Below, one piece after another: positions 1,361-62,770 of a stretch of 64,000 nucleotides of DNA; positions within the stretch are counted from its first letter, which is position 1, and every line of letters begins with the position of its first letter. The stretch is taken from contig CP075492.1 in the NCBI GenBank assembly GCA_021613535.1, positions 17,794,001 to 17,858,000 of the forward strand, read 5' to 3'. A program made the translations under genes and the position numbers. Origin of the DNA: Adineta vaga (taxonomy: Eukaryota > Animalia > Rotifera). The notes beneath the pieces were generated by a model. That model did not search any database. It was not told the DNA's origin and was given only the letters and a program-made list of their open reading frames with translations.

Positions 1361-1418
1361 TCTTGAGGATGTGGGTGGTCTTTCAATATAAGCCATACTC
1401 TAACCCACATCCTAAAGA
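1361..1418. repeat. Telomere-like palindrome P1
   Basis: TCTTGAGGATGTGGGT ... ACCCACATCCTAAAGA, between the GPCR and NHL genes. Confidence 0.9.
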
Positions 1419-1458
1419 TAATCATTGAACCGAAACGAACTTAAATTAAGTATAAAAA

Positions 1459-2958
1459 CTAAACAGTACAGTAACGCGAAGTACAATACGGTGGTCTTAT
1501 GAGGAAAAACACATAAAAACTATCGCATTTTGTCACTGACACTGTGTTCGACCAAATGCATGGATTTCCACTCCAATGGTAACAAACAGTTCCAGATACG
1601 GTGATGCCAATTTCGGATGGAAATGCACCAACAAACCAACCGGTGGCTTCGGTTCCGCATCGATTTATAGGTACAACATATTGAACTAGCATTGTTCCTG
1701 CACCATTCGAGAAGCGAAACCATGATCCTGAATTTATTATTGGATCTGATTGATCGCACAATTTAATTGTAGATAGACTATTAATATTTCGTGTACTATC
1801 GGTGATCAATATATAATTTGAACATTGTGAGGGAAGAGAAGACGTCGTAGTTGTTATTGTACTCACTAAATGCACGTACAAATTAAAAAAAAGGAAAACG
1901 TGTTAGAAGAATGGAATAAATAAATTCATTGAATAATACAGAATCAATATACTTACTACAATCATTTTCAATTAAATGAAACTTTTGAATGCGATGATTA
2001 TTTGAATCTGTAACGAAGATATTACCGTTACTATCGAATGCCATTGTATGTGGATGATTCAACTGATTGGCTGATGTTCCACTTGTACTTGAACATCCAA
2101 ATAAACACTGAAATTCATCGAATATTGAACGAATAATTCGATGATTTCCACTATCGACAATAAATAAATGACCATTGCCATCTCGAATGACACATGTTGG
2201 ACGATTCAAAATGAAACTAATTCTTGCTCCGTATCCAGCTATTGTAATTGCATTTATTTCACCTGGATGGAAAAGTTGAATTCGATTGTTATAACTATCG
2301 GCGACGATCAGATGAAACTCATTATCAACAAAAATTCCATATGGATGATCGAGCATATTCATCAATGGTCCAGGACATCCAGTACCCGCTATAATCGTCG
2401 GTCTTAGTGTGATACTATTATAATCTAATTTATAAACAGAATGTGTCTCTGCTGATGAACAGTAAAGACTATTGATTATATCAACAAAAAGTCCCGTACA
2501 TGAACTAGATATTTTCATGACCGGTTTATTGAAAGTACTGTTCCATGACCATTTATCTACTCGATTATGGCTATTTCCATTGTCAATATAGATATCATTA
2601 TTGTCATCAACGAATAGACTCGATGAATTAATAAACTTTCCCGTGATAATTTTCCTGCAATTTATCAATTCTTCGTAACAGATAACAATCTGACTGTTTT
2701 CTGGCTCGGTTACAAAAATGTAGTTCTTTTGATTGATAAAGATATTAGTTGGCTGTTGGCCAATAAAACTTTGATTAACTAATGTGATTGCTGTATCATT
2801 CCATCTCACACATGAACTGAATTTAGGTTGATTAAAAGAAATACCTAAGAAAATAAAATGAAAAACTTCATTTTGATTTAACTATATAAAAGTATATATT
2901 TACCTAAACAATTTTGAATAATCACTACAAAAATAATTATCCAAGTTTTCAGTAACAT
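1459..2958 (-). CDS. Secreted NHL-repeat protein with C-terminal uromodulin/GP2/OIT3-like D8C domain (3 exons)
   Basis: Signal exon MLLKTWIIIFVVII (ATG at 2958). Exon 2 has FNQPKF..C.RWN and NHL repeats (VADSYNNRIQ, VTDSNNHRIQKF). Exon 3 has a Thr linker then WFRF..CGTEATGW..VCYHW..RYCT. GT-AG introns. Confidence 0.85.
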
Positions 2959-3408
2959 GCGAATCAAGTCTTATTCTTTATAAAACTTTAAATTTGCTTA
3001 ATATATCATTTCATGAGAGAAATTTTCATAAACAAGAATAAAATTTATTATTTAATACAAATTCAATCTAACGGTAATTTAATCCTTCAAAAAAAAACAA
3101 ATCATGACATCCGACAAATAGTATTTATTTAGAAAAGTCACGTACGATATTTTTTAAAATAAAGAATTGTTTGCATCAAATTATTTTTTTGTCAAAGATA
3201 AAAAAAAGCATTTCGAACATGATGGTTGACAGAATATAAATATGAATAAAATGAGACCTAAATCTTCATAAACATTATACATTGAATTTCGATTTATTTT
3301 AATATCATATTTAGATCTATGCACTGAAGAAATCTTAATTTTTTTCGATTCCTAGATCAATTTCAAGTCGAGTTTCTCATGAAGATATTTCTTTGATTGT
3401 TACACACT

Positions 3409-3472
3409 TTAGGGTGTGGGTGTGGGTGAGAAACAGGAGAATGTCTACACCTATACCCACACCCACACCCTG
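3409..3472. repeat. Telomere-like palindrome P2
   Basis: TAGGGTGTGGGTGTGGGT ... ACCCACACCCACACCCTG. Confidence 0.9.
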
Positions 3473-3733
3473 ATCCATATAGTCAGTATAGTAATTGCGA
3501 ACAAAAATTGAATGTAAGCAACCGTTACATAAGCGTCTCACCTGGCATTGTAAAAGAATTTTTCGATCGAATTCTCTTTACAAGAGCATTAGAATGAGAG
3601 AATTTATGAAGTATATGTATTCACTGTAAACAACAGAAAGAAAGCACGTGTGATGTTTTGTAATTGTTTATATTGGTTTGCAAGAGTCTTGAATTTTCAT
3701 AAATATTTTATTTATTATTAGATATTAAATACG

Positions 3734-6139
3734 ATGGATCACAAGAATGATTCGCTCGACTACAATACATTCAATTCAAAGAAAGATGTATCAATTACAA
3801 ATATCAATGAAAACATTCACGAAGAAAGAATGTCTCCTTCATATTTATCGTCAAAATATACTGTTCCTACAACGGAGAAGAATGAAGAACAATTTGATTC
3901 AATGTACGAAATTTTTAGTCATTATCGATCAAGAATATCAGACGATCAGATCAAGTCAAACTCTAAAACAAAGTCTGAGAAACGTAAGTTTTTTTTTTTT
4001 TGAATAATATTATTTTATAACTATTATATATGATCAAAATCTACAGTTATTTGTAATCTTCTTCAAATGGAAATAGAAGACACAAAAAATCTTGAAGATT
4101 TTTCTCTTATATGGTGTGATACTAATGTAAATTCATATGAGAACCAACAGATGCAACATGAACTACGCAAAGAAATCAATTTCTTCAAAGCATTCACGAC
4201 ATTCAAAGATTGTTTCTCATATATTCAATGTCATACAGATGAAAAAATTGTTTTAATTGTATCAACTATCTTAGTGAAAGAACTTGTCCCTATGATTAAT
4301 CATTTTCCATCTATAATATCGATTTATGTTTTGTATCAAAATGATGAGAAATGTAATCAATTGATAAATGAATATGAAAAGGTGAGTTTCAACGAACTGT
4401 TTTTATCGATTAATTTTTCAATTTTTTGTGAAACCGTTTAGGTAAAGATAATCTTCGGATCGTCTGAGAACTTGATTGACGAAATAAAAATTGATCAAAG
4501 AATAAGAAATAAAGCAGAAACCGAGCAGTTATCAATTAGTATCTTCGACTCCAAAAGCACTGTTGAATCTACACATGAAAAACGTGGGAGTGATTTTATG
4601 TGGTTTCAGTTAATTATTGAAGCTCTTATGAGATTCGAAGTTTGCAGCATGGTACTAGCGGTTAATGAACTTTTTGAAATCTGTAAAAAGCAATATATTG
4701 ATAATGAAAGAAACTTAGCCATTGTTAACGAATTAGAAACAGCGTACAGTGCAGAGAATGCTATTGAATGGTACACAAAAGATACTTTTGTTTACAGAGT
4801 GGTTAACAGAGCTCTAAGACAACAGGATGTCGACACGTTAATCTTATTCTCATTTCTAATTCGAGATATAAACAAACAATTGCAAGACGAGCAACATTTT
4901 ATCGATGATAGTATTAAAACATATCGTGGTCAGCTCATGTGTCAAGAAGAACTAGAAAGATTACAGATCAGTAAAGGGCAATTTATATCGATCAATACAT
5001 TTTTTTCAACAACACTTAACAGAGATCTAGCTCTTATATTTGCTGGTTCTGAGAATACGGACATGACAAAAAAGTCTGTTTGTTTTGAGATCACAGTCAA
5101 TACTCGTTTAAGTGCAACGAAACCGTTCGCTGCCATTGATCATCTTAGTGCTTTTGGAAATGGTGAAGAAGAAGTATTGTTCATGGCAGGAAGCATATTT
5201 AAATTAAATGATATTTCTATGGGCGAAAATGACAACATTTGGATGATCAATATAGAACTAGTCAATGATGAAGTTGATGAATTAAAGTCATTATTTGAAT
5301 CAATGAAAAATGAGATTGCACAAGAAACAGATTTTCTCTCGCTTGGAAATTTATTTCGTGTTCGAGGAAAAATTGATGAGGCTGAAAAATACTTCAAACG
5401 AGAAATTCGATCAGTACCCGAACATCATCCAAACTCATGGCGGTGTTGTGCCAGTCTTGGAAATATTGCTGCTGATAGAGGTCGTTTTGATCAGGCATAT
5501 GATTATCTTACAGCTGCACTTGAGCTTGCACAAAACTCACCACTTTTGGATCGTGGTTTCATAGGTGGGATATACACTAACTTAGGCGTTGTTTTAACAG
5601 CGATAGAAGATTATGAAAATGCTTGCAACCATTATTCTAAAGCTCTAGAAATCACTGTAGAAGTATATGGTAACAGACATCTCTATGTTGCAGATATTTA
5701 TCTCAATATGGGTAATGTGTATGCAGAGCAACATAACTATGACTTAGGTCTCTCAAACTATAATAAGTGCTTGGACATTAAACAGATATTACTCCCTGAT
5801 GATCATCCTGCGATTGCTCAAATATTGGTGAATATCGGAAATATACTGAGAAAACAACAAAAATGGAATTTATCTTTAGTTCACTATCAAAATGCGCTCT
5901 CTATCCAATTGAAATCCATTCCAAACCATACTTATACAGGCACTACTTACCTTAATATAGGTCGTCTTTATAACGATGCCTTTGAAAACTATAGTGAAGC
6001 GATGGACAACTACGAAAATGCTCTTATGATTTATTCCTCTGCTTTTCTCCCATCAGATCATCCAAACTGTATTTTACTCGAAAAATTAATTCATAAGTGC
6101 AAGACAGCTTTGGAAGCAAATGATGAGAAAAACACATAA
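3734..6139 (+). CDS. ADP-ribosyltransferase (R-S-E type ART) + TPR repeat protein (3 exons)
   Basis: Introns at ~3984-4046 and 4382-4441. ART motifs TYRGQ / FFSTT / EEEVL, then kinesin-light-chain-type TPRs (LPDDHPAIAQ..NIG). Confidence 0.9.
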
Positions 6140-7142: not shown

Positions 7143-7223
7143 CGAGATGGGTGTGGGTGTGGATGAAGACTGAACACCCACACCCACACCCTCACCCACA
7201 CCCACACCCACACCCACCCTCAA
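7143..7223. repeat. Telomere-like palindrome P3 (right arm duplicated)
   Basis: GATGGGTGTGGGTGTGG ... (CACCCA)nCCCTCA(CCCACA)nCCCTCAA. Confidence 0.9.
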
Positions 7224-9699: not shown

Positions 9700-10365
9700 A
9701 TACTGTGGAGGAATACGTTTTTTATGGAGCGATATAGAAATAAATTCTATACATAAGAACGTATAAAATTTACTATAAAGGAGCAGAATCAAAATAATTT
9801 TATGGGTTACATTGTAAAAATAAAAGTTTATCAATTTCCAACGTATAAATAATTCTTTTCTCCCTTTTTGAAGTGCTCTGTAAATCAAGAATGATTTTAT
9901 AACTTTGCCAAATAATGCGATTTAAAAATCTTTTCCCGTTTATGAGACCATCATAAACGATTTTTATCGTTGTTTATTCTCCCTTTATGCACTGTATATA
10001 TAAGAAAATGATTGAGGATGCTGGTGTAGAGATGAGATAAATCTATTCAATAATTTCAGCAACACCATCAAGAAAGAAAAAAATCTTTGTTGTTAATCTT
10101 TTGTATCGAACAGAATGTGAAACATAGATTTTATTATAATTCTGAAACAGAAGAATATCCAAAATTTCTTTTCATATTTTTAATTCCCTCTTTCCACCAT
10201 CGCAATATTAGAATGATTTTGAGATAAATTTTTCATCCATACTCTTCGAGTTTTGTGATAGCGTGAAAGAACTTCATAAGAATTACCAATAATATCATAT
10301 ATTTGACCAATATTATAATATAAGGCAGCTATATCGGGATGATCTGACGGTAAAATTTCCTTCAG
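9700..10365 (-). pseudogene. Decayed TPR gene fragment whose 5' end abuts palindrome P4
   Basis: Minus strand reads KEILPSDHPDIAALYYNNIGQIY, then frameshifts and stops. Confidence 0.6.
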
Positions 10366-10366
10366 G

Positions 10367-10421
10367 ATGAGGGTGGGTGTTGGTCAGACTATACTCTTAA
10401 TCTACACCTACATCCACCCTT
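10367..10421. repeat. Telomere-like palindrome P4
   Basis: TGAGGGTGGGTGTTGGT ... ACACCTACATCCACCCTT. Confidence 0.75.
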
Positions 10422-10810
10422 GTTCAGACAAAGACTTAATTCGATAAAATGACCAATCATAATCTCAACATCTCTTTTATTCTCATAACTTTGACATTCA
10501 TGTTTCATCATACATTGTATTAGACTTATATTTAATTGAGCAATAAAAATATTGGAATGAGCAATAATCAAATTTAGCAATAAATATATTAAATGAGCAA
10601 TATATATACTGAATGAGGGATAATTAGATGAAATGAGCAATAATTAATTTAAATAAAATAATGTGTGTATAAAAAGGGCAATAATAATCCGTTCATTTAA
10701 TACAAAAAAATGTTGAGGGGGCTCCGCCCCCTTAAACCTTATATTTTTCTGAGAAAATCATCAATTTTCTACGACAATTCTAAAAAATCTGAGGAGGCTC
10801 GAATGATTTC

Positions 10811-10854
10811 TAGGGGGGCTCAGCCGCCGTCAACTCCCCCTTGGCGCCGCCACT
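10811..10854 (-). mobile_element. hAT-like transposon terminus remnant
   Basis: Minus strand TAGTGGCGGCGCCAAGGGGG..GGCTGAGCCCCCC, a GC-rich terminus style common in hAT MITEs. A similar end lies at ~55557-55602. Confidence 0.35.
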
Positions 10855-10921
10855 AGGTGTAGGTGTGGGTGTGAGGGTAAGGGTGGGTCTGAATATAACA
10901 AAGACACCCACATCCACATCT
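10855..10921. repeat. Telomere-like palindrome P5
   Basis: GGTGTAGGTGTGGGTGTGAGGGT ... ACACCCACATCCACATCT. Confidence 0.8.
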
Positions 10922-12240
10922 TGCACCTCTCCATCATTCATGAAAAACTATATTTGCAAGCACACCATTGGTATGTCCATTAGATTGAAATATTGCAAAC
11001 CTCCACCTGAGGCAAAAAAGTAGAAATTGGTACAAAAAGAAAAAGAGGCAGACCATCGAAAGCAAAAAAAGCTTTATTGATTCAATGATTAGTTATATAT
11101 ATTCCATTTTTCTTTTTTTTCTTGCCAATTGTAAAGAAAAATAATGTAGTTTATTTTCTTTTTTGTTGCTCAAGTATGAAATTAATATTGTTATATAATA
11201 AACTATTTATTGTTCATTTAATATTATAAAATTGTTCAGATAATGTTTTCTTATTGCTCGAAAGTTACTGCTAAATCATGTTTTAATTATTGCTCATTCC
11301 AATATTTTCATTGCTCAAATAAATACAAGCCATTGTATTATACATTTATCACATCTAATTATTTTAAAAGATCTATCGAATATTTGGTTGGTTTCGTCCT
11401 TCGCTTGGATTTTTAAGTGTAATCACAAGGTTATATATCATTCTTTGTCTCATTACGAGTATATAAAAAGCGCTTGACGTGTTCTCATCTAGGTAACATC
11501 ACATAAAAATATATAAATAAATGTCTATAATCAAATACGCTTATATTACTTGATGATCTTGAAAGAGCATTAATAACGTATTCTTTGAGATTTGTCGATG
11601 ATTAATTAATCTGCGTCTTATAGAAGATACTTTATTTCTTTAAGAACACCTCTTTCTCGATTTTCATTGGCAGCTTGTTCATTACAGGACATATACAATA
11701 CTAATTATACTGAAGATAAAACTATATTTTTCTCTACCTATATTCGGTAATTATTTTGCAAGTTCGTGTTCTCTAATATCAAGTTTTTAAAAATCTTGTA
11801 AAAACTACCTGTAATTCTTCATTTGTGCTTAACTATCCTGTGCTTATAATTCCTTGTGCTCATCGTCATCGTTCATCAACTTTTATAATACTATAATACA
11901 CTTTTATGCAACACATTAGATAGATGATGTAAAACGGGATTGTCAAGAGAAAACTAACATTCATCCTTGAGATAGTATTAATATTTTTGTTTGTTCTCAA
12001 AAGAATGCAGAACAGAGCAGGATACGTTAAGGATTACGCAAATTTTAGCAGGGCAAGGCGGTTGCAGCAAAAAACTCATAGGCCAGAGTAGGGTATAGGT
12101 TACTATAATGTCTTACCCTGTCGACCTTTAGTCACGAGTTTGATGATTTATTTAGTCAATTTTTCGTTTTCCTATGCAAATTCATCAATATACACAAATA
12201 CTTATTTTATAAGAAAAAAGAAAAGTTCCGTGTATGTGCT

Positions 12241-12296
12241 TGGGTGTGGGTAGAGATCTCAGGCGGATGTAGTACCCACAACCTCACACACCCTCA
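12241..12296. repeat. Telomere-like palindrome P6
   Basis: TGGGTGTGGGT ... ACCCACAACCTCACACACCCTCA. Confidence 0.75.
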
Positions 12297-12701
12297 CCGT
12301 CATACGCGGATTTTGAAGGTGTTGTGAGAAAATAAGTACTACGAAGAACATGGTTGATTTTTGATAAAGATTCACTGCTCTTCATTGGTTGTGAAGAATT
12401 TTTTGTTTTCTCTCTCCACAGCCACCAATTTTACGAATGCTGAAGACTATTTCTATGACGAAAGTGACATTAGACTAATATGTCTAACGAAAATTCATAT
12501 GCTATACCAGCTGAATCGTCTGTTCAAAACATAAAGATACAAACAGTCTCCTATTGTATGCGTGTGTTTCATAGTAAAATATCAACTACAAAATACTTTT
12601 GTAATAACGACTTATACTGAATGCGATTAGACAATTGTTATTACAGATAATAACTTGAAATCAAACTAATCATGTCAATAATCGCCATAAAAATAGTGTC
12701 T

Positions 12702-14448
12702 TCATATTAGCTCATATAACTCTGCGCTATGCACTGTGGAAATAGTTCCACCAATTACTAGCACGTTACCATTTGCTAATGTTGTTGATGTGTGTCCAAG
12801 TCGTCCTTCATTCATTTTACCAGCACTTGTCCAACGTTCAGTTAATGGATCATACAACTCAGCACTATCGAGAGGTCTATAACCATCCCATCCACCAGAA
12901 ACTAACACATTTCCATTCGTTAATATGCTTGCTGTGTGACTATGTCGATTCGTTATCGAGTAATCAGTAATGACCCAAATTCCTGTTGATGGATCATACA
13001 ACTCAGCAGCTTTATTAGAACCACCGCCAGTAATTAACACTTTTCCATTTGTTAATACAGATGCTGTATGCTTATATCGTACTATATCCGTGTCACCAGT
13101 GATTGTCCAAGTTTCTGTTGATGGATCATACAGCTCGGCGCTAGTTCGATCATTCATACCAATAGATCCACCTGTAACTAACACTTTTCCATTTTTTAAC
13201 ACTGATGCCGTATGATCTGATCGTTCATGATTCATGTCACCAGTAGCTGTCCACATTCCTGTTGATGAATCATACAATTCTGCACTAGCTAGACGACTAC
13301 CACCATAAACTCCACCAGTAATTAATACTTTTCCATTTGTCAGTATAGATGCGGTATGATCACGTCGTGGTTTGTTCATTTCACCAGCACTTGTCCAACT
13401 GTTTGTTGATGGATCATACAATTCAGCATTTTTCAAAGAACTAAAACTATATGTTCCACCCGCAACCAACACTGTTCCATCTCGTAATATTGATGCTGTG
13501 TGACCACGTCGTGCATTCGTCATACTACTAAGTGTTGTCCAAGTTTCTGTTAATGGATCATACAGCTCAGTGATGTTTAGAGGCTGTTCATAAACATCTC
13601 CACCACCAATAATCAACACTTTACCATCAGTTAATATCGATGCTGTATGATCACGACGTGCTTTCTTCATATCACTAGTATAAGACCATTCTAAAACATA
13701 GTATTTCAATTCAATGATGAGTATCAAAGATTCCCTTATTTCACACAAATACTCTCGCCTATCTTCACACGTTATTCGAAACTCACTTGACTGTTGACTA
13801 GTTGTTGTCGTTAAAATTTCGGTCGTAGTTGCCGTTGTAGTGTTCGTCGAAACTAATTAATATGAAATATAGATATTAAAAAAACGGTTCGTTTTTAGTT
13901 TGATATAGTAAAGGATAATATAAACTCGGTAAGCTTAAACTTATTGATAAGAGACTATATAAAGTATTAAAGTTCAACTAAAATCATAAATCAACCTGAA
14001 AACAAGTTGTTTCTATTGAATATTCGTTCTTCGTATATAAGCTATGAATATAAAAAGAGCCATACTATGTTTTCATCTTTTGCTAGATACACTATAACGG
14101 ATGTTCTATTAAAGATGTATGTTTTTCATTCATGAGTGACTATTCCACCTGCATATCAGTGCTTATCGGGTTACCTGTTGGTGGTGGTGGTGGACAGATT
14201 CGTTTATCAGCCATTGATATTGGATAACAAACTGGATGTAAGTGACATCTAGTGTGATATACACAGATATGATCAGGTTCATAACAAGCATTATTTTCAC
14301 ATGAAACAAGTTCAGAACAAGTCACCCAAAGAAAGGCACATATACCGGAATCCTTAGCGCCTTTCATAAGCAGACAACCGCATGCACTATTCGTTGAACA
14401 TTGGTCATTGTGAGAGCCGTAACATATTTGAGAATCTGCTGGAGCCAA
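12702..14448 (-). CDS. Cys-rich domain + Thr-rich linker + Kelch/galactose-oxidase-type beta-propeller protein (multi-exon; start uncertain)
   Basis: Seven repeats R..HTASILTNGKVLI.GG...AELYDP (12702-~13690), a Thr-rich exon at ~13785-13853, and a Cys-rich exon at ~14177-14450. Confidence 0.8.
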
Positions 14449-14913: not shown

Positions 14914-14961
14914 TAGGGTGTGGGTATGAATATTTCTTCTTTACCCACACCCATACCCTCG
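14914..14961. repeat. Telomere-like palindrome P7
   Basis: TAGGGTGTGGGTA ... TACCCACACCCATACCCTCG. Confidence 0.85.
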
Positions 14962-15267
14962 ATGCTAATGAATCAGTGACAAAACACATCAAACATTAAT
15001 ATTTTTATTTTTATTTCTTACATGCGGTCTATTCATGATATACATATTTGAAGAACATTATTATTTGGCATACTTTTCTTTTTCAATTAAAACTTTGTCT
15101 GAATAACTGTAGAAAATAATTATATTGTTAAGTGTGTAGTTTTTTCAAATTATATTCCTATCTTCTACTAATAGAAATTTCAGTATTTATTTTTTCATCA
15201 AATGTAAATTCTTTAGAAAATATTAGTGGTTATTAAATCCTTTTTGAAGATGATATATGACTTTCAT

Positions 15268-15340
15268 AGGGGGGTGTGGGTGTGGGAGAGTGTGAATACA
15301 ACAGACTCCCATCCTCACCCACACTCTCGGACACATCCTT
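15268..15340. repeat. Telomere-like palindrome P8
   Basis: GGGGTGTGGGTGTGGGAG ... CTCCCATCCTCACCCACACTCTC. Confidence 0.8.
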
Positions 15341-15779
15341 GAGTACACAAAAGTAATAAAGATATTACTGCTGTATAAGTGTGACGGACGACTGTTGTGA
15401 GTGCATTTCAAATACTCAACGAAATGGAATGACGAAATCTTCCCTCGTTAGTTATTATTTCATAAAAACAAAAACAAAAGCAGTAAACTTCAGATTCACA
15501 AGAAGAAAAAACACAGTACGAAATAATCACTTAGCATATACATTCTTTTATTCTCTCGAACAATCGAACAACATCGACAAAATTTCAAGGTAAAAGAGAA
15601 ATTCTAGAATACTTTATTTGCGTTCGTTTATATAAAAAATGATATAAAATCATCAGCAGTGTAGAAGTTCCATGAATTACGATCTTTTAAGGAATTTAAT
15701 TTTCATTTTTTACTTTTGAATATTAACTATCTGTTTTTCATGCATTAGGGTCCAATAAACAATAGATTAGCTTACACAG

Positions 15780-18700
15780 ATGGAAACTATTAAAAAGCAA
15801 TTGAACGATATTTCATCGTATACAGACACTAATGGTGGTGTGAAGAAGTTCTTAAAGAATAATTTTCAAGATTCAATCGAAATTATCAATGTAATGTCGA
15901 AATTTAATGATCAATATATAGCCGACACATTCAATTCGAAAACATCAAATAAGGCAATGAGAATAATTTGGAAATCAGCATTACATCTATTATCGAATAG
16001 CAAATATTTAAAAACACTCGAATGTAAGCATCTATACAAAATTGGATTATTAACTATTAAAATTATGCATAATAAACACATTGGACATACTACGAAAAAT
16101 GAGTTTTGTGAATCAATTTTCCTATATAGATATCACTCGAATAATTTGACAGAATGTCTTGTACAACATATTCAAAGTATAACAGATTCATCATCAATTC
16201 AAATTATTTGTTTATGGTTAGATATTGTAGTTCATTATCAACATATCGTTAGAGAACAACAAGACGACTTTGAATATAGTTATTTTGATCCAAGAAAAAT
16301 CATCTCAGAATGTATTATTAAACAAAAATATAATCTACCAAATGATTTAAGATTACGTGGATCATTTTTATTTTATTTAACATATATACCATATCCTCAT
16401 CTACACCCTGATGAAAAACTTGCATCAATTTGTCGCCATCATATTCTTTCACAAATGAAAGATTTAGATAAATGGACATCAGCAACCGTACATTGTGCTA
16501 TGGGAAGTATCTGTCTAATGACAACGTATTATTCTGAACAATTTAAATTTGATGAAATATATTATCATTTTTTATTATATATTATTACTTATGAAAAATT
16601 TCAGCAAATGTTAGTTTCAACATGGAGAAATGATGAAACGATTTTAATCCATACGATTACAAATTATTTTTATAATACTATTGATAATAATGAAAACATG
16701 AAAGTTACACTTGGTACGGCTCTCGATAAGTTAAATAATCTGTATAAAAATGTTAAATATGAATCAACAAAAATGAATATATGTTACCTAATTCTTATAT
16801 CAGCACACGAAAAAAGTGTTATTTCTGATGAAATTATCATCGGATGTTTTCAGCATATAAAAAGATGTAATATGCCTCCAATTCCTCAAGAAATAAAAGT
16901 ACGGTCAATTTGTCAATACGATCAAAATCGTGTTGTGCGTTTCCGAAATCAAAAACTAGAACAAAGGAAAAACCCGGATAAATTTCTTCACGGTTTAAAA
17001 CACGCATGTCAATACGATTCTGTCAAAGATGCAATTATTAGATTAAAGAAGATTGATGAGTTAGCGGATATGATCGAAGGGCATAGTGAAGTAGTATGTG
17101 ATATTCTTGCGCTTTTATCGACAAAAACAAATGCTCAAAAGATATTAAAAGAGAATTCTAAGTTCTGTTGTTATATGGATTCTCAGACGAGCAAGATAAA
17201 AGTTAGACAATCAAACTCACTGAAATTTGAACAGATTGCGAATAGTTTTCAAAGAGAACGACTTATTTCACCTCATCTTGTTAAAGAAAAGGTTGTACTG
17301 AGCTGTTCTGATACAAAGCTCAGCAATCATATCAAACATCATTTAAAGAAAGTTGGTCATGATATATTAGTTTTAAATGAATACAAAAACGAAATGGAAA
17401 AGGAAGAATTTATCTTGAAATGTAAATGTATGCTTGTTTGTTTAACTAATAATTACAGTCAATATCAATCAGATTTAATTTTTGGTTATAAAAATCAAGT
17501 AAAAATTATACTGATTATAATTGAAAATGAACAACCATATTGTCCCAATGAACCTTTTTTGAAATTTATTTTAAAAAGATATTCATCATCATTGATTCGT
17601 ACAAATATCGACAAACTTGATAAATTATACGAATTATTATCAAAAGAAATCGAACGTCTTTCATCTACATCATCACAAAAAATAATGCTTTCTTCAGATG
17701 AAAATAATAAATTAAAGGGTTCACCTCTACAAGCGATTGTAAGTTACATTCTACTTACAGAAAAGAACGATATATGAAATTATCAATTTCGATTTTAGGA
17801 AAAAAGTTGTACAGCTGAAGATCTGTACAAGGCATGTAAAGAAAATTATATTGATAAAGTGAAACAATATCTTCAAAATACCACTAATGAAGTATTAGAT
17901 GAATCTGTTTTCAAAGAAAGTACAGCATTACACATAGCATCTTATAATGGTCATGATGAAATCGTTCGATTACTTCTTAAAGTAGGTGCATCTCGATGTA
18001 TACGTAATTATCATAATTTAACAGCTTTTGAAGAAGCGCGAACACAAAGTACAAAAGATTTATTTCAAATTAAATCAGATAATAACGAACAAAATCGTTT
18101 TATTAACAATGATATTTATACTGAATGGACGACTGCTTTTCAAGATCCTCTGAAAAAACGAAAATATCTTCGACGAAAGTTATATGAATTACGGGAACAC
18201 GATCTAGATGGTATTCATGAAAATTTAATGAAATATATGCATATTTTTATTGATACATTACCTTTAGCAAACCAAAAGAAGCAAATCGTCAAACAATTTT
18301 TCTTAGTAATGAGAAAGAAAGTTGATCCAATTTATATTATTGGAGCGTATACAAGTGCAACTTGTTTTCATAAATATTATAATGAATATATAGCACAACA
18401 TGCCATTAATTTCTTTGATTCATCAATTGTCGATATTCATGTTAATTATAAAATAGTTAAATATGTGGTGAAAAGTATTGCTATACTTATGTTTCATTGG
18501 GCATTTAATCAATATAGATATTCGGGAAAAACATATCGTGGAATGTTAATGACTAAAGAAGATTTATATAAATATGTTGTTAATTCGAAAATAATGAACA
18601 AATCATTTTTATCAACATCGAAATCTAACGAAATTGCAGAATGCTTTAGTGGCTGTTTAAACGACGAAAATAACCTACGAAAAACACGTGACAAACAAGC

Positions 18701-18911
18701 AATTCAAACTGCTGTTCTTTGTACTTATATTATTAAAAATTCTGAAACAGCTTTATCTCTTGAAACAATATCCAGACAGAAAGTAGAAGAAGAAGTTTTA
18801 ATTTTACCATTTTCAGTCTTTGAAGTTAAAAGTGTTCGACGTACACCAACAAATACAATTGACATTCTATTAGAAGAAGTTCTTGATGAATCAAGTGAAA
18901 AAGATAATTAA
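15780..18911 (+). CDS. Helical/ARM-like region + degenerate TIR-like domain + ankyrin + ART fusion protein (2 exons)
   Basis: A phase-0 GT-AG intron at 17739-17798 joins the two ORFs in frame. Ankyrin TALHIASYNGHDEIVRLLL; ART TYRGM / FLSTS / EEEVL; TIR-like VVLSCS..CMLVCLTNNY..IILIII..YCP. Confidence 0.8.
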
Positions 18912-18974
18912 ATAGATTTTACTAAAGTTTTATTCTTTTTTTTAATAAACGCGATATATCTTTATATTCATTTG

Positions 18975-19088
18975 GAGGGAGTGTGGATGTCGGGTGACTT
19001 TAGGGTGTGGGTTAAAGTGTGAGTATGCGTATCCCTTTCTTCTGGCACTCACACCCACCCTCTTGAAGGTGTGGGCGTAGGTGTAGGT
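18975..19088. repeat. Compound palindrome cluster P9
   Basis: GAGGGAGTGTGGATGT, TAGGGTGTGGGT, ACTCACACCCACCCTC, TTGAAGGTGTGGGCGTAGGTGTAGGT. Confidence 0.75.
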
Positions 19089-19467: not shown

Positions 19468-19625
19468 TGGGTGGGTGTCAGTCATCTCTTTCTTCTCATC
19501 CACACCGTCGCTAGATCATTAGAATAGAACTTGCCTATTTTTAACATAAAATCATCTGCTAAGATTCTTAGCTGGATTAAAACTGATCATGGTTAGTAGT
19601 CAAACCCACACTCATACACCCTCAT
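19468..19625. repeat. Degenerate palindrome/half-sites P10
   Basis: TGGGTGGGTGT..CATCCACACC and ACCCACACTCATACACCCTCA. Confidence 0.55.
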
Positions 19626-42159: not shown

Positions 42160-42270
42160 GAAGGGTGTGGGTGTGGGTGTGGATCAGCGAAGGCAAGGTT
42201 GATGGTGCCAGTAATTAGTTCATACAATAATGTCACTCTTACCCACACCAACACCCACACATCCTCAAGA
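42160..42270. repeat. Telomere-like palindrome P17
   Basis: GAAGGGTGTGGGTGTGGGTGTGG ... ACCCACACCAACACCCACACATCCTCAAGA. Confidence 0.9.
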
Positions 42271-42587
42271 TGTATGCGAGGGATGTTATAGGAAGACAAG
42301 TACGAGTAAAAATACCATAATTTACTGAACAAAGAAGATTTTATACTGATATTTTAATTATTTTACTGATCAAATGAATAAATTACTGATCATTTAAATA
42401 CGAGCCTTTATTTTTTAGGAGCACAATCCAATCAAGAAGAAAGCTTATAATAACATGAACATAAAATATGATGTATTATTGGCGATTTCCACGAGAAAAT
42501 GCAGCACTTCTGCATCCCTCTGTATAGGAAAAGATACGTGATGTTTACTTCTTTCTAGTAATAAAAAAATAAGATCCGTGGAGTATC

Positions 42588-43841
42588 CTATTGTTGAGCC
42601 AATATGGTCTCGTAATCTGGAAACGTCACTTTCTCAGCCGTCTTTGATTTGGTGAGTTTTTTAATAAGGCCAGTAAAGGCAGGTTTGGCTGCAAAACTCA
42701 GGAAAGTATTCCTGAGCGCAATCGCAGTACGCGTTTTTGGTGAAACAAGACGAATTGATCCTGGAGCCATTTCCTGAGCTGCGGTAACGTATGGACGCAA
42801 CAGTGTTTCGTATTGTATGAAAGCCTTTGTATGATCTTGATGGCAACCTATCTCACCAGCGAGGATGTAAGCGCCAATAAAAGCTAGAGTTGTACCCGTA
42901 CCACTGACGCCTGAAGAATAGCCTGCATCACCCACCAAGGCAACTCGTCCCTGTGACCATCGATCCATCTTGATGTGTGCAACAGCGTCAAAATAGAAAT
43001 CATTTGCGTTCTTCATCCCACTCAGTACCCGAGATGTTTCGAAGCCTGCATCTGCGAATACGTTTCGTAAAAGGTCTTTTTGTGTATCTACATCAAGGTC
43101 TTCATAACCACGCTGTGAAGTGCGAAATAACAACAGGGCACGTGTCGTGCCCTGATTATCTGGACGAAGCACCACTGTTCGTTCTTTGGGAGCATTGTAC
43201 CAGCGTGCCCATCTGCCATCTGAATGACTGTAGGGAATCGTAAAATATGCAGTATACATATCTTGAGGGTGGGTCGAAGTATTGTTCCCAAAGACGAGAT
43301 GGCGAGTTTTTGATTGCGTACCATCAGCACCGACGACCAAGTCGAATTCACGCTCATTACCGCTAGCAAACGTAACTTGCACATGATCTCCACGATCGTT
43401 GATCGATGAGGGATGATCACCAAAGATATACTCGGTATGATTACGACTGTGCTCATAAAGTATGCGTACTAGCTCACTGCGAAGTATTTCAATATCGGCA
43501 ACGAAACCTCCATCGCCTAAGTTTTCCACACTGAATGCGGCTCGTGTGCGCCCTGCACTATCAACAATAGCCACTCCTTCCTCTCGGGTGATGTTTTCGC
43601 GAATTATGTGATCGATACCCATGCGTCGTATGACCTCTCTTCCGGCACCACGTACATCAACAGTTTGACCAGCTGTCCGCAATTGCGATGCACGCTCGAC
43701 TATTACAGGTCGTACACCAAAACGATGAAGAAAATACGCTAATACAGGACCAGCCACACCTGCACCTACGATAAGAACCTTTCGGTTTTCCGACAAATTC
43801 TTTGCACTATACGAGAGTGAACGTAATAACATGGAATGCAT
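42588..43841 (-). CDS. FAD-dependent monooxygenase (FAD_binding_3 family), bacterial/fungal type
   Basis: GAGVAG, DLVVGADG and RVALVGDAGY motifs; intronless; visibly more GC-rich than the flanks. Confidence 0.9.
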   Translation of the reverse strand: MHSMLLRSLSYSAKNLSENRKVLIVGAGVAGPVLAYFLHRFGVRPVIVERASQLRTAGQTVDVRGAGREVIRRMGIDHIIRENITREEGVAIVDSAGRTRAAFSVENLGDGGFVADIEILRSELVRILYEHSRNHTEYIFGDHPSSINDRGDHVQVTFASGNEREFDLVVGADGTQSKTRHLVFGNNTSTHPQDMYTAYFTIPYSHSDGRWARWYNAPKERTVVLRPDNQGTTRALLLFRTSQRGYEDLDVDTQKDLLRNVFADAGFETSRVLSGMKNANDFYFDAVAHIKMDRWSQGRVALVGDAGYSSGVSGTGTTLAFIGAYILAGEIGCHQDHTKAFIQYETLLRPYVTAAQEMAPGSIRLVSPKTRTAIALRNTFLSFAAKPAFTGLIKKLTKSKTAEKVTFPDYETILAQQ

Positions 43842-46872: not shown

Positions 46873-46963
46873 TCTTGAGGGTATGGGTGAGAGTGTAGGT
46901 GAATGTGAGCTGAAGATAATACCCATATCCTCAAGAACGACTCACTTCCACACCCACCCTCGA
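46873..46963. repeat. Telomere-like palindrome P18 with second right arm
   Basis: TCTTGAGGGTATGGGT ... ACCCATATCCTCAAGA, then CCACACCCACCCTCGA. Confidence 0.9.
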
Positions 46964-47428: not shown

Positions 47429-47475
47429 TTGAGGATGGGTGAGGTTTGAGAAGATTATGACACTCACACCCTCAA
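47429..47475. repeat. Telomere-like palindrome P19
   Basis: TTGAGGATGGGTGAGG ... CACTCACACCCTCAA. Confidence 0.8.
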
Positions 47476-49352: not shown

Positions 49353-49402
49353 GAGGTGTGGGTGTGGGTGTTATAAAGAGAAGAACTACACCCACACCCT
49401 AA
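49353..49402. repeat. Telomere-like palindrome P20
   Basis: GAGGTGTGGGTGTGGGTGT ... ACACCCACACCCTAA. Confidence 0.9.
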
Positions 49403-49623
49403 CATAGGGAAGGACTATTCCGACTCGTAATTACTCAGCACAATTTCCTCAGTTTCCTACCATAAACGGCAAAAAATGCACAGAAATTGACCGGCAAACA
49501 CCAATATTCTCCGTCATTCGAACCGGTTTAAGGAACCAGCAGGAAACTTACGGGACCAAAAATCACGTCCACACAGCATCGTCTTGCGTCTTCCATTTGA
49601 AGTTCCTATAATTTTTTTACCTA

Positions 49624-49686
49624 TCTTGAGGGTGTGGGTGTGTATTTGTCTTTTACTAACAACCCAGACCCACACCCACCCCTCAA
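49624..49686. repeat. Telomere-like palindrome P21
   Basis: TCTTGAGGGTGTGGGTGT ... ACCCACACCCACCCCTCAA. Confidence 0.9.
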
Positions 49687-49786
49687 ATCAGAAGAGTATA
49701 ATCCACTACTTTAAGAAACAGGCAGGTTGTGTGGTCACAATGCATCTCAACGTATTCTGTTGTTATATAGCAATCAATAAAAATCT

Positions 49787-49858
49787 TTTGAGGTTGTGGT
49801 TGGGTGTTAGAGTCGAGAGAAGATATTCACATTCATACACCCACACCCATCCTCAAGA
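49787..49858. repeat. Telomere-like palindrome P22
   Basis: TTTGAGGTTGTGGTTGGGTGT ... ACACCCACACCCATCCTCAAGA. Confidence 0.9.
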
Positions 49859-51810: not shown

Positions 51811-51867
51811 ATGAGTGTAGGTAAAGCGAACAGTTATCCTAGTCCTAATTCAAACCAACACCCTCAT
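51811..51867. repeat. Degenerate palindrome P23
   Basis: ATGAGTGTAGGT ... ACCAACACCCTCAT. Confidence 0.6.
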
Positions 51868-52215: not shown

Positions 52216-52254
52216 TCGAGGGTGTGAGTTATCTCTTTTCATCATCTACACCCG
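52216..52254. repeat. Degenerate palindrome P24
   Basis: TCGAGGGTGTGAGT ... TCTACACCCG. Confidence 0.6.
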
Positions 52255-52337
52255 AACATCTCCATTTTAATTAAACTTTATTCTTCATCAATCTGTTTCA
52301 AACTGCGTATAGAAGAAAACAATTTCGTAAATACTGC

Positions 52338-52590: not shown

Positions 52591-52646
52591 CTTGAATGTG
52601 GGTTTGTTTAATACACTTCTCTTCATCTACACCCACACCCTCAAGA
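52591..52646. repeat. Telomere-like palindrome P25
   Basis: CTTGAATGTGGGT ... ACACCCACACCCTCAAGA. Confidence 0.85.
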
Positions 52647-54376
52647 TTCTATTTGGATAGAAAATCATTTGAATTTACCTATTGAACAAAAAATATAATA
52701 TTTTATTACAATTAAAATTATATAAATATCCAAATTTACGTTATTCTGTTAATAAAATGCAATTAAGATACTTATAGAAGATCATTATTCATTATTTTTC
52801 GAAAAATTTATTATTTATTTCTGTAATAATTTATGTTTATAATTGATAATTGATGATTATGTAGATACACTTTGTAAAGGTAGTCAAAAAATAATATTTA
52901 ATAATGAAAATGATCCTTTCTTTTGTATCATGAATATAAAAAAATTTAGTTCCCCTAAAGATTATAATGATGAAACCAAATTTTTATCTATGGAAGATAT
53001 TGAAAAGAATTTTAAGAAAAGTATTCAACAGATAAATGGAGAATCACTTTGATTCTTTTTAAATTAAACATCATTTTAATAATTATAATTAACATATTTG
53101 AAAATATTTTATTAAAGAAGTTCATCATTTATTATTATGATCAAATCTTACATCTGCACTTATCATTTGAATATTATCTGTGGGTTTTTTTTAATATATC
53201 TTTTTAATGTAGTAATTCATTTCATTTTATGTGTTTTATTTATGTTAATTGTAGATTTTAGTCAAAGGAGGAAAAAGCAGACTTCTGTACTTCTTTATAC
53301 CTCATAACACTTATATTGGCATATGTTAAAAGTTTCATCCCAAAAAAACAGAACAAAAGTGACCTGTCACTGGAATTATTGAAAATTGTATTCCCAATAA
53401 ATAACGCTCGTCGAGGCTGACTCGCTTGACCCTCGACTGAATTCTCATTAATCAGCCTACATTATGTCTTCTGTGAATGTGCTTTAAAAGCTTCCGTTGT
53501 GTGCAGTCTCATGCAAAGTTTGTTTGAATTTGTTTTATGAAAATGAGATGTCGATTATTTTTAACAATTGTTTTATGAAGAATGTGTTACATTATGATTT
53601 GATAGAAATGCTTCATGTTTACTCTATCGATGTAAATTATCAATTAAACAAGAAAATTATTGTGTTGAATTTACTTCAGGATATTTACATCGATACATTC
53701 CACTCAAATATTATCATTATTATTCAAAAAGTATGATTAAACAATCTCATAATAATTCACCTCGATAAACTAAGAAAAGACAATACAATTAATTAAATGT
53801 TCATTAAGTAAATAATTCTTAGTCGAATTTAATTCATTTAATATTACAACGATCGTTTACTTTTGGAAAAATACCATTAGAAATGAAATTATAAACTCTA
53901 TTCATTGTAATATTTGAGGATACTGAAGTAATTGTCAAGTTTGTTACCGAGAGTACGATAAAAGTTTTCAATAATTTTGCAAATAAATATGTTCAATATT
54001 GTTTTGAAATAATGTGTAGGAATTCATATTTTTCAAAATATCTAACATGTTTGAAAGAAAATTCTACATTATATTTCGATAAAGAAACATCTCCATTACT
54101 GAATCTCATCTGAACTATATAATGAACTTTTAAAAAATATAAATATATACTCATTTTCTATGTTTGCGTGTGTTAAAGTTAGCACGCATCTTTTTAAATG
54201 CAATTAATTAAAATATTTATTCGAAGAAAAGGCAAATAAGTGTACTTTGATATTCTTTTCTTTGTATTTCAAATTAAAAGAAAGATCTTTTATCTTTTAT
54301 AATATATTAATGAATTAATTTTATATAAGTAATCATAAAACATTTTTTTATTTTTCACATCGCAAAAACTATTTCA

Positions 54377-59598: not shown

Positions 59599-59657
59599 CG
59601 GGTGTGGGTGTGGGTATCTATTGATTATTTCAACACATACCCGCCCACACCCTCAAG
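59599..59657. repeat. Telomere-like palindrome P27
   Basis: GGGTGTGGGTGTGGGTA ... ACCCGCCCACACCCTCAAGA. Confidence 0.9.
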
Positions 59658-59827
59658 AGAATACTTCTGGTATGCGATATCGATAGTATTCGAATTTGAA
59701 CGAGCAAGACATGAAAATAAAGGATAGTTTTGTTTTATTAGGTTAAATATGAATGGAATTCAATAGTTCTTTTTAGCATGGTAAAAGTATGATAGGATAA
59801 AAAAACAATAGTTCTGTTTATTGTTGT

Positions 59828-60850
59828 TCAATTTGCATGTGTGACGAATCGTTGACATGGTTGAACTAATTTTTTTTGAATAATCTGTTTTAATTCTCGT
59901 CGAAATATATCTGATGTTAATATAAAAATTGGAAATGTTAAAGCATAACCAAGATAAATCATATCATAGAATAAATTATTCATAAATGTATCCCGTACAG
60001 CACGCCATCCTGATAATGTAACAATATTAATATATGATCGATAAATACCATATACTGGTAGGGGAATATTGAAAATTAAATAAACAATCACTTGATTAAT
60101 TAACATCTTATGTAGTTGTGTTTCTTTTCTTGATGCAAGATTGATGTTAATATTTTCACTTCCAGTAACTGATTCTGTTGTTCTTACACGGCGTTTACTT
60201 TGATGAACATTACGAAGAGTAAGTAATCCAAAGATTGACATTGGAATAATTGGAAATAAACCATTTTCGAATGTAATAAAATAATTAAAATAGGTGAAAA
60301 AACTTTTTGATTGAATTCGACATTTGTTATGACGAACATCATACGTGACGAGAACTTGAATGTAGAAAAAAATCCAAATAATAGCATTTATAATAACAAG
60401 ACGAAGAGCAATTTTTGATGAACTCCATTGACGAAGATTAGCCTTTTGAGAACTGGAAAAGAAACGATCTGCAGACGCAAAGATAATGTTATACCGAGCA
60501 CTAGCCATTGAAACATAATAAATATAAAAACGAATCTTACAAAACCATGATGGTACAGAATTAACCGAAACACCATAACCATATTGAATCATTCGAATAA
60601 AAGTTGCAAAATTAAAAATAAATAACTGTGAAAAATTTGAAGCTATAAAATAAATAGCACAAGGACTTTTACGAAATGCTACTTGTTGAAATACAATACA
60701 AGTAGAAAGTGCTCCAATATTTCCAATAATCCATGCAAAACCATCAAGAAATTGTGAAAAAGTTTTAATCAAAAGATTAAACAGAATTGTTAATCGAATT
60801 TGTTCATCTACAGTACCAACTATAGTAGTAATCACTGTAAGGTTATTCAT
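59828..60850 (-). CDS. Rhodopsin-like GPCR, intronless
   Basis: 7TM with ASADRF and FPIFILTSDIFR. Confidence 0.9.
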   Translation of the reverse strand: MNNLTVITTIVGTVDEQIRLTILFNLLIKTFSQFLDGFAWIIGNIGALSTCIVFQQVAFRKSPCAIYFIASNFSQLFIFNFATFIRMIQYGYGVSVNSVPSWFCKIRFYIYYVSMASARYNIIFASADRFFSSSQKANLRQWSSSKIALRLVIINAIIWIFFYIQVLVTYDVRHNKCRIQSKSFFTYFNYFITFENGLFPIIPMSIFGLLTLRNVHQSKRRVRTTESVTGSENININLASRKETQLHKMLINQVIVYLIFNIPLPVYGIYRSYINIVTLSGWRAVRDTFMNNLFYDMIYLGYALTFPIFILTSDIFRRELKQIIQKKLVQPCQRFVTHAN

Positions 60851-61346
60851 GTTAGAAAATTAATGTTGATTGTTTCAGTAGTCTCTTCTAAGTGAAATCA
60901 AAAATAAATTAATAAAAAATTCGTGATCGTATAGTGGAAGTCTAGTTTGTTTTGAATAGATGTTTGATGTATTGTATGTAATAACAAGAATTTTGATCGC
61001 TCGAACGAGGAGATTTAGATGGAAAACTAATGTTATTTTTACTTCAGATATAGTTAAGAAGAACTCGGTTATTTTCACGATTTGATCTTTGAATGATCAC
61101 AAAAAAAATGAAAAGGAAAAAATCAGTGAAAAATCAGATTAAAAAAGTCAAAAAGGATTTTTAATTTGTTTAAAAGCATAGACTTTCAGTGAAAACCATC
61201 AACAGGACTATTCTATATTTTCTACACATTGAATATTGATCAGTAAATTTTTCCTCATTAAGCACGTAGATCAAATCTATATTTTGATATAGTATATTGA
61301 TGAAATTCTAGTTGTTGATACCTTAATCATATTCATGTCTTAATCT

Positions 61347-61371
61347 TCTTTGAAGGGGTGGATGAGAGTGA
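61347..61371. repeat. Degenerate left half-site P28
   Basis: TCTTTGAAGGGGTGGATGAGAGTGA. Confidence 0.4.
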
Positions 61372-62750
61372 ACGTGATATAGTAAAAGTAAACATGGGTA
61401 CGGCTAGTCGTTGAGTGGCCGACGAAGCTACACAATTGTTTTCAGAAGAATTAGAAACGATTTGTATTTCTTTCTTTTCAAAGAATAGATAAATATAACA
61501 CTAATAGTATTTTAGTATGTTAAGTAATTCAGACGTAAAAATAGCAACGCGTTAAAAAATATATTCATAGACATTCAATAACTTACTATAGTCAAAGTTT
61601 TCAACAATCATTAGAATTCTAGGATAAATATGAGAAACTGCTTAAGTCCTTGGTTTTCACAAGATATACTTTGACTTATCAAACATCGACTAACAATAAC
61701 ATAGATAGAAACTATCTTAATTTCCTTCTGATTCAGATAGTTCTCATTGTAATCAGTATATCATTGGTAAAATTCGATCTATAATGATAAGAAATAATTG
61801 AAAACGAATGTTTTAATATATTGAATAAATAACATAACATCAATCGAAAAAAAAGCGCATTTTTCTCATTATTCAAACTAATATTGTATGAGAAAAAATA
61901 TTTAATTAGTTAGTTATTTCTTCGATATCACTATTCTATATTTAGACTAATAAAGATAACATGATGAAAAGAAATAAAAATATGAAATTAACCATTGAAA
62001 ACAGGAATATTTATTTTACCTAAAAGATCTTGAGAAAATAATTACCATTTGACTGACCACGTGCTTTCGGTTAAAGAATGATGTCGAGAAAATAATTAAA
62101 TTCCCGGAGCAATAGAGAACGTGACGTTGAATATTGTTCTTCTCACATTCTTGAAAAGTGAGATTCATGTGTAAATATTCTATCCTCATCCTAAATAAAA
62201 GTTTATAATCGTTCAAAGAATAATATATATAACTGATTTTTTTAAAATACTAAAGCAATGATTTTAATATAAATATAATAATAGATTGAAGAAGAAAAAC
62301 TTCTTTTCTCAAATGATTAAAATCTTATAAAGATCAAATTAAAAAAAATTGTTTATTTTCTATGGAATTGATTCTTTACAAATATCCAAATAAGATGGAG
62401 GATCAGTTTGATTTAAACTTATTATTTCATAACTTGGTAAATCATTCGAATTTGCTTTTATGATAATTTCTAACTAAAAATAAATAAAATCAAATGAAAT
62501 AAAAATCAATTTTACATGATAATTAATTAAATTAAATCGATCATTTCGATGAATTTTCTTTGATGAATTAATTCTCCAAAGAAGAAATTTCGAAGATTTT
62601 GAATAAATTTCATTTTGAATTCTTTTTAAACGATTTGACTTAATTTTCAAATGTAAAAAGCAATAAGAAATTGAACCAAAAATTAAGAAAAAAAAACTGC
62701 AAAAGAAATTAAAATAAAATAATATTTTTTATGAAATAAATCATAAAAAT

Positions 62751-62770
62751 ACCCACACCCACACCCTCAA
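62751..62770. repeat. Perfect right half-site P29
   Basis: ACCCACACCCACACCCTCAA directly fused to RING coding sequence. Confidence 0.85.

Follow-up and report, generated by a model that had tools for sequence, protein, structure and literature searches.

Paired telomere-repeat palindromes at junctions of unrelated DNA in Adineta vaga: candidate scars of break repair

Introduction

The subtelomeres of bdelloid rotifers contain short stretches of telomeric repeat together with repeat-protein genes and foreign genes, and their Athena/Terminon retroelements prime on exposed ends via a C-rich tail (PMC2861651, PMC6431247, PMC3846280, PMC8494291, PMC7943196). These elements need no endonuclease and occur at breaks as well as at telomeres (PMC6431247, PMC3846280). 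A 2026 study of A. vaga lines reported that new deletion breakpoints carry telomeric repeats and fragments of Athena, and used the term neotelomere scars (PMC13564844). Here we describe short palindromes built from telomere hexamers in a 64,000-nucleotide stretch of Adineta vaga chromosome 3 (contig 3, 17,794,001-17,858,000; hereafter the window), which has a GC content of 30% and lies 2.5 Mb from the right chromosome end. The palindromes sit where stretches of different origin were joined, and we favor, with somewhat better than even confidence, the explanation that they are scars of DNA break repair built by telomere-type templated synthesis.

The interstitial telomeric repeats and healed chromosomes of bdelloids (Gladyshev and Arkhipova; PMC2861651, PMC6431247, PMC13564844) resemble the palindromes in being short (TGTGGG)n runs near chromosome ends, likewise among transposons, repeat-protein genes and foreign genes, with repeats added to truncated ends. 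Head-to-head pairing of the repeats, a TCTTGA leader and loop families are present here and undescribed there; we found no description of them in the literature compared, which does not include the 2007 and 2017 primary papers. The endonuclease-deficient, Penelope-like Athena/Terminon elements carry a telomere-type 3' tail, (ACACCC)n or (TCACCC)n, that is used on exposed G-rich ends. They are coding elements of 6-40 kb with a hammerhead motif and repeats of a single polarity, whereas the units here are 50-110 bp, non-coding and palindromic; with no open reading frame (ORF) in 50-110 bp and no Rfam hammerhead, the units were rejected as members of that group.

More distant systems share single features. 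At human 2q13, a head-to-head telomere fusion, a G-rich and then a C-rich array join two former chromosome ends, as in our units; that junction is one large whole-chromosome event, whereas here there are thousands of arms of 15-50 nt with a conserved loop and leader. The germline telomere-bearing elements of ciliates (Oxytricha TBE, Tetrahymena Tel-1) are also internal segments ending in telomere repeats with the C...G polarity of linear chromosomes. They encode a transposase and have target-site duplications (TSDs), whereas our segments consist of heterogeneous host DNA. Integron attC sites and bacterial repetitive extragenic palindromic (REP) sequences are likewise intergenic imperfect palindromes with conserved ends and a variable core; they are bacterial and not built from telomere repeats, while here no recombinase was seen and paralogous boundaries lack the sites.

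Results and Discussion

Structure and polarity of the units

A telomere-hexamer scan followed by folding of each candidate identified about 24 paired G-arm/C-arm palindromes and six solo arms between 1361 and 62770, in line with the roughly 29 palindromes counted by an earlier sequence-only reading of the window. Each unit consists of a G-rich arm, a loop and a C-rich arm, and its ends are often TCTTGAGG and CCTCAAGA. The motif TTGAGGGTGT, with at most one mismatch, was matched 26 times in the window against 2.07 expected and a maximum of 5 in shuffled sequence. In a larger contiguous stretch of 264 kb (the window and the next 200 kb), we found 93 G-arms and 93 C-arms, and neighboring arms no more than 120 nt apart followed the order G then C in 61 cases, C then G in 5, GG in 2 and CC in 2. 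This is the polarity expected for two ends, each extended at its 3' side by G-rich telomere repeats, facing each other.

The hairpin design, conserved outer ends, intergenic position and lack of TSDs proposed by the sequence-only reading were all confirmed. When eight copies were folded as DNA hairpins, free energies ranged from -12.8 to -23.1 kcal/mol (z -3.2 to -6.0), and shuffled sequences were never as stable. TCTTGA occurred at 17% of outer ends against a background of 0.7%, a 23-fold enrichment. Palindrome centers fell inside coding-like ORFs in 9 of 61 cases where 27 were expected (p 8e-7). No TSD signal was found, the longest common flank word being 4.07 for own pairs and 3.98 for cross pairs. 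Arms within one unit were about as similar to each other as arms across units (0.294 versus 0.284, p 0.165), leaving a mirror-image origin of both arms by foldback copying unsupported. Helitrons, which have 5' TC and 3' CTRR ends and a hairpin close to the 3' end and which insert between A and T, were also rejected: the ends of our units are mutual inverted repeats and the whole unit is a hairpin, whereas Helitron ends are not inverted repeats.

The units of the window, in window coordinates, are as follows.

1361-1418: palindrome 1, between convergent G-protein-coupled receptor (GPCR) and NHL genes; left leader TCTTGAGG
3409-3473: palindrome 2, both arms with three perfect GGGTGT units; hairpin z -5.2
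7147-7223: palindrome 3, G-arm of 20 nt and C-arm of 51 nt; hairpin z -3.2
10364-10420: palindrome 4, loop of the GTCAGACTATACTCTTAA family
10856-10918: palindrome 5, at the center of a terminal inverted repeat (TIR) element of about 800 bp (10520-11334) and present in every copy of that element
12240-12302: palindrome 6, about 320 bp past the 3' end of the Kelch mRNA, without RNA contig coverage
14914-14960: palindrome 7, right edge (14959) exactly at the start of homology to locus L001
15270-15340: palindrome 8, inherited by both copies of a duplicated 401-bp segment (14959-15359)
18975-19088: palindrome 9 (19000-19062), directly followed by a solo G-arm (19064-19088)
19469-19509: palindrome 10, decayed and weak
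19601-19625: solo C-arm from the hexamer scan
21998-22043: palindrome 11, right edge (22042) at the start of homology to locus L010, which lacks the site
23048-23114: palindrome 12, GA-rich loop and end CCCTCAAGA; hairpin z -6.0
25726-25791: palindrome 13, GA-rich loop; hairpin z -5.6
32526-32574: palindrome 14, loop of the GATAGATGTAGTAC family
37878-37938: palindrome 15, from hexamer scan and folding
39033-39324: uncertain pairing of a G-arm (39033-39059) with distant C-arms (39169-39180 and 39310-39324)
42161-42267: palindrome 16, 54-nt loop, within a second TIR-element family; window homology breaks inside the G-arm
43263-43273: solo G-arm with TCTTGAGG inside an ORF, possibly due to chance
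46873-46961: palindrome 17, TCTTGAGG...CCTCAAGA, with an extra C-arm (46947-46961)
47429-47475: palindrome 18, from hexamer scan and folding
49354-49403: palindrome 19, next to a dispersed repeat of about 950 bp that stops at 49347 and extends about 550 bp further in six other copies
49623-49688: palindrome 20, full leader TCTTGAGGG; hairpin z -4.9
49786-49857: palindrome 21, 100 bp after the stop of an LRR gene; same loop in Adineta ricciae; arms decayed
51854-51867: solo C-arm from the hexamer scan
52217-52255: palindrome 22, weak
52597-52647: palindrome 23, right edge (52645) at the start of homology to locus L032, which lacks the site
59599-59659: palindrome 24, 170 bp after the stop of a GPCR gene; hairpin z -5.1
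62749-62770: solo C-arm, entered after about 73 codons by a RING-finger ORF (62709-62990, minus strand)

Distribution in the genome and in other bdelloids

The genome searched comprises 100.8 Mb in six contigs (chromosomes 1 to 6: 18,146,847, 16,274,841, 20,354,754, 15,224,634, 16,930,519 and 13,893,210 bp). A strict two-arm pattern was matched 372 times, against 3 for the reversed control. Since this pattern recovered 10 matches in the 264 kb where the arm scan gives 61 pairs, the count suggests a genome total of, very roughly, at least 2,000 units. All 29 copies with perfect leaders on both sides were located within 3.7 Mb of a chromosome end, consistent with the subtelomeric clustering that the sequence-only reading had anticipated. 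On chromosome 1, the strict matches listed lie at 0.13-0.68 Mb, singly at 2.16 and 11.55 Mb and densely from 13.1 Mb, and none of those listed falls between 2.2 and 11.5 Mb. The few copies inspected in chromosome cores were all carried inside a transposon.

Units of the same type were present in A. ricciae, Rotaria sordida, R. socialis and Rotaria sp. Silwood2, the last with about nine pairs in 21.6 kb; units outside A. vaga include the CCCTCAAGA end and GA-rich or ATCTTCTCACTCA-like loops. Because they occur in both Adineta and Rotaria, the sequences indicate that the feature is old and shared across bdelloid families. Among metagenome matches to the strict pattern, similar units were carried only by low-GC moss contigs of unverified origin; many of the matches were GC-rich bacterial hairpins and were set aside.

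Homology ends at the arms

The window was compared with all similar genome stretches returned by the search, and the partner loci were then read. Homology ended at the edge of an arm at 14959, 22042, 49347 and 52645 and within an arm, that of palindrome 16, at 42160. The segment 14,959-15,359 shares 98% identity with L001 and begins with the base next to palindrome 7; opposite this palindrome, L001 has unrelated sequence and no palindrome, and where the homology ends it is L001 that has a palindrome and the window none. Homology to L010 begins at the base following palindrome 11 and homology to L032 (93%) at the base following palindrome 23, and neither partner carries the palindrome. The dispersed repeat of about 950 bp is broken off 7 bp before palindrome 19, and 550 bp more are common to six other copies. 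The RING-finger ORF runs into the solo arm 62,749-62,770. In A. ricciae, which has an 88%-identical orthologue, an additional palindrome stands right after the common GTTGAGATG, and the alignment with A. vaga stops there. Across 155 paralogous alignments, 14 BLAST segment ends fell inside arms where 4.1 were expected (sd 2.0), and each alignment spanning a unit had it in both copies. No clean filled/empty pair was found among them, that is, none of the empty sites typical of miniature inverted-repeat transposable elements (MITEs) that the sequence-only reading had named as evidence against its proposal. Because homology ends at the arms and there are no clean insertions, the palindromes mark joins between stretches of different origin. 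A downstream palindrome at L014, a paralogue of the gene at 15771-18911, could not be aligned with that of the window and was uninformative.

In four comparisons, the unbroken relative also contains the bases that precede the first GGG (TCGA, TA, TTGA and TTGAGATG), which are thus derived from the flank. The flank therefore supplied A, GA, TGA or TTGA ahead of the GGG, as expected of de novo telomere addition, and the G-strand runs 5'-3' towards the former end, both in the genome-wide pattern and in the arm order of the 264 kb. In the fifth comparison, the flank ends earlier and is followed by a leader-like CTTCCGAGG that is absent in the relatives. Flank and leader overlap by 0-4 nt at the breakpoints. 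Because these bases vary between junctions and A precedes the first GGG in 67 of 96 ends, the pattern fits synthesis that enters a fixed TCTTGA-then-GGGTGT sequence at a point set by microhomology of the broken end.

The same comparisons bear on the proposal of the sequence-only reading that the palindromes are site-specific recombination sites of an integron-like gene-cassette system. The sites are intergenic, bound gene-sized pieces and have conserved ends around a variable core. Paralogues of the bounded segments (L001, L010 and L032) continue past the corresponding boundary without a site. The modules are therefore not separate cassettes that each carry a site, and they include truncated transposons and gene fragments. 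The breakpoints lie at outer arm edges, with one inside an arm, and show no fixed crossover point; no recombinase domain was seen among the 20 largest ORFs of the window. The part of the proposal that is supported is that unrelated modules are joined at the palindromes; the integron mechanism itself is scarcely credible.

Alternatively, the units could be tiny foldback or MITE-like mobile elements (50-110 bp, with telomere-like inverted arms and TCTTGAGG termini) that inserted independently and later provoked breaks or ectopic recombination, which would have left the flanks unmatched. The in-arm breakpoint is what ectopic exchange would leave, and the enriched termini, the many exact loop copies with fixed arm/loop registers (see below) and the occurrence in several bdelloid genera are all properties of such an element. 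We nevertheless consider this explanation unlikely: neither a TSD nor a clean filled/empty pair was found among the informative comparisons, no known transposase acts on such ends, and in four of five cases the breakpoint is at the outer edge and the flank supplies the bases before GGG, which is unexpected for a pre-existing finished element.

Units within TIR elements

Two families of TIR elements contain units, which in both mark the place of a sealed internal deletion. In four copies of the second family, the palindrome 16 unit lies between both halves of the element, whereas the window copy and three others have the loop, the C-arm and the right half only. In these half copies, the G-arm is variable in length, with up to about 260 bp of repeats (L021), and is followed by unrelated sequence.

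The right half in the window (42268-42400) has TACTGATCAAATGAATAAAT subrepeats and at least eight copies in the genome at 86-89% identity, four of them complete and four of them half copies joined to telomere repeats. The TIR element around palindrome 5 (10520-11334) is non-autonomous, has GAGCAATAAA-type repeats in subterminal position and is flanked by a TSD of 8-9 bp. It was found in at least 15 copies (90-96% identity), also in chromosome cores, all with palindrome 5, and a short ORF in the element ends in an AT-hook-like KRKRGRPSKAKK. A GC-rich insert of about 150 bp (10707-10855), with inverted ends of its own (GGCGGCGCC-type), abuts the palindrome 5 G-arm. Only the window copy and L002 have this insert, probably another small transposon that is nested within the TIR element.

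Recurring loops and modular behavior

The sequence-only reading held that the spacer differs in every copy; instead, the spacers form at least four recurring loop families. A GA-rich motif was present in 17 of 61 loops (5 expected). Genome-wide, the 19-nt loop GTGAAAGAAGAGGAGATAC recurs in 17 exact copies and in 81 with at most two mismatches, against 5 for a control, nearly all of them in distal chromosome parts; matches to the loop include C1:12.51 Mb, C3:5.43 Mb and C3:5.45 Mb. At eight 19-nt-loop loci with unrelated flanks, the register of loop and G-arm was identical in all eight and that of loop and C-arm in five (seven when one substitution is allowed); TCTTGAG was found on the left in five and CTCAAGA on the right in five. 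The loop of palindrome 23 recurs identically at L031 between different flanks. The unit thus appears to be copied as a whole and to behave as one module.

The left flank of L059, one of these eight loci, is 98% identical to that of a chromosome 6 locus, and both flanks end in a unit of the 19-nt-loop family, 46 bp apart, with unrelated sequence on the far sides. From the sequences, this looks like two separate acquisitions of one module. No second copy of the right flank of L059 was found anywhere in the genome; therefore, the added DNA ended at the end of the unit, which favors a discrete template over a chromosomal donor as the source of the copy.

These loops are also the main difficulty for a further explanation, in which two ends were healed separately by telomerase and fused head to head without a unit-sized template, the loops being junction filler or read-through into telomerase RNA. 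The polarity is exactly as this predicts, the correlation between arm lengths within a pair is weak (rho 0.27), and very long G-arms occur, such as that of about 260 bp in L021. Telomere-telomere fusion should leave direct abutment or random filler, whereas we found loop families with both registers fixed and loop types conserved from Adineta to Rotaria, neither of which is expected of random filler. Plain fusion may contribute, because arm similarity is no greater within a unit than between units; it is insufficient alone, because it does not explain the loops. As the general explanation, we consider it distinctly unlikely.

Transcription and orthologous copies

RNA contigs showed that the Kelch gene (minus strand) is spliced with GT..AG joints, and therefore the runs do contain transcripts. 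The Kelch mRNA ends at about 12,623-12,683, and its contigs stop 320 bp before palindrome 6, which is uncovered; the transcript of the next gene starts at about 15,684-15,747, 360 bp after the likewise uncovered palindrome 8. Palindrome 7 alone may fall in a weakly covered 5' exon. A hairpin in the 3' untranslated region or a terminator was rejected, with palindromes 6 and 8 lying outside the RNA contigs, as was an intron or introner-like element, with no palindrome coinciding with the spliced joints. In the window, no Rfam family reached the gathering threshold. The palindromes are not RNA elements.

At 13027-13428, the Kelch gene contains 2.8 tandem units of 144 bp, and RNA contigs of paralogues give artefactual joints there that are not introns.

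Selected cis-elements between genes, such as insulators, terminators or binding sites for telomere proteins, would account for the strong avoidance of coding sequence and the presence across genera. Such elements are very unlikely. Chromosome cores, which hold most genes, are almost free of the units, and units next to mapped transcripts are untranscribed and 300-400 bp from the transcript ends. Palindrome 21, downstream of the LRR gene, is common to A. vaga and A. ricciae and decayed in both; in this sole orthologous pair, the hairpin is lost in A. ricciae.

In A. ricciae, a gene with WWE and ADP-ribosyltransferase domains (L054 6920-8133) adjoins the LRR orthologue.

Proposed origin by break repair

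The break-repair explanation draws on the observed polarity, location and junction position of the units, their flank-derived entry bases, their loop families and their presence across genera. The strict-pattern count (372 versus 3) and the arm order (61 G then C versus 5 C then G) support it, as do the telomeric repeats reported at new A. vaga deletion breakpoints (PMC13564844). We infer the following scheme, including its template molecule, its polymerase and its order of events. A discrete template would have the order leader TCTTGA, GGGTGT repeats, loop, ACACCC repeats and TCAAGA, and a broken 3' end would anneal to its leader through 0-4 nt of microhomology. A reverse transcriptase of the telomerase or Athena type would copy the template onto the broken end, and the newly made end would then be joined to another broken end. 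A simpler variant, in which two ends are separately healed by telomerase and then fused, would give the polarity and not the loop families. Once formed, units would be inherited, decay and travel inside transposons, and their arms could be reused as breakpoints. We also propose, tentatively and as a possibility on the unlikely side, that bdelloids have a dedicated and conserved template of hairpin form, either a small RNA or a portion of the telomerase RNA, which a telomerase-like or Athena-like reverse transcriptase copies onto broken ends as a universal connector between unrelated fragments.

Several points weigh against the break-repair explanation. The informative junctions are few (six comparisons and two MITE families), and some boundaries may be blurred because the paralogues are only 77-98% identical. 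No template RNA or enzyme was identified in this analysis. The palindromes lack RNA contig coverage, although data of this kind would miss small RNAs, and a model unit searched against Rfam gave only sub-threshold matches to generic miRNA hairpins and no hammerhead. The match to the leader plus at least four repeats that lies nearest to a chromosome end is 15.7 kb away from it. That arms are no closer to each other within units than between them fits the template variant and the separate-healing variant alike. Static sequence, moreover, would look the same whether a unit was made at a break or was inserted first and broke later.

To our knowledge, bdelloid rotifers survive massive DNA breakage and have the most foreign genes of any animal, mostly near chromosome ends. 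If the units are repair patches, each is a dated, sequence-tagged record of a past break, and about 2,000 mapped junctions per genome could be compared between haplotypes, isolates and species. A hairpin-template connector, if true, would offer a physical route by which chromosome ends are reshuffled and, possibly, foreign DNA is captured. The fixed leader predicts the sequence beside the template of the rotifer telomerase RNA or of another template RNA; in the telomerase RNA, this would be CCACACCC followed by UCAAGA. If the units are instead a small mobile element, it would be an unusual one, with telomere repeats as arms.

Neighboring genes and repeats

The genes of the window belong to typical expanded distal families (rhodopsin-type receptors, NHL, Kelch, ankyrin, TPR with an ADP-ribosyltransferase domain, LRR, a GTPase, a RING fragment and a USP9X-like ARM piece). 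The gene at 4442-6139 combines an exoenzyme-type ADP-ribosyltransferase domain with TPR repeats. Between palindromes 12 and 13, an ORF pair (23739-25357) has a match to the USP9X/UBP24 ARM-repeat domain that is confined to the final 230 domain positions, and it may represent part of a gene or a short version within the family; its chromosome 1 paralogue (70-79% identity) has no arms nearby.

Two assemblies of Rotaria socialis differ by an apparent 8-kb inversion (L189 7962-7966 and 12522-12578), which is likely an assembly artefact. This rearrangement (L189 against L190) was considered as a palindrome junction and rejected, its edge being a scaffold N beside a transposon TIR.

A repeat of about 1.5 kb at 27862-29420 starts near a 25-nt palindrome centered on ACCGCGGT (27973-28030) and is probably a transposon, without bounding telomere arms. 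A copy on chromosome 3 at 0.42 Mb is 97-98% identical, and more than 30 copies were found at 70-85%. At 63149-63264, three tandem units of 38-39 bp contain a degenerate G-rich telomere-like stretch, GTGCGGGGTGGGTGTCGGTG, and adjoin an inverted GGGCATATAGGGC repeat at 63087-63287.

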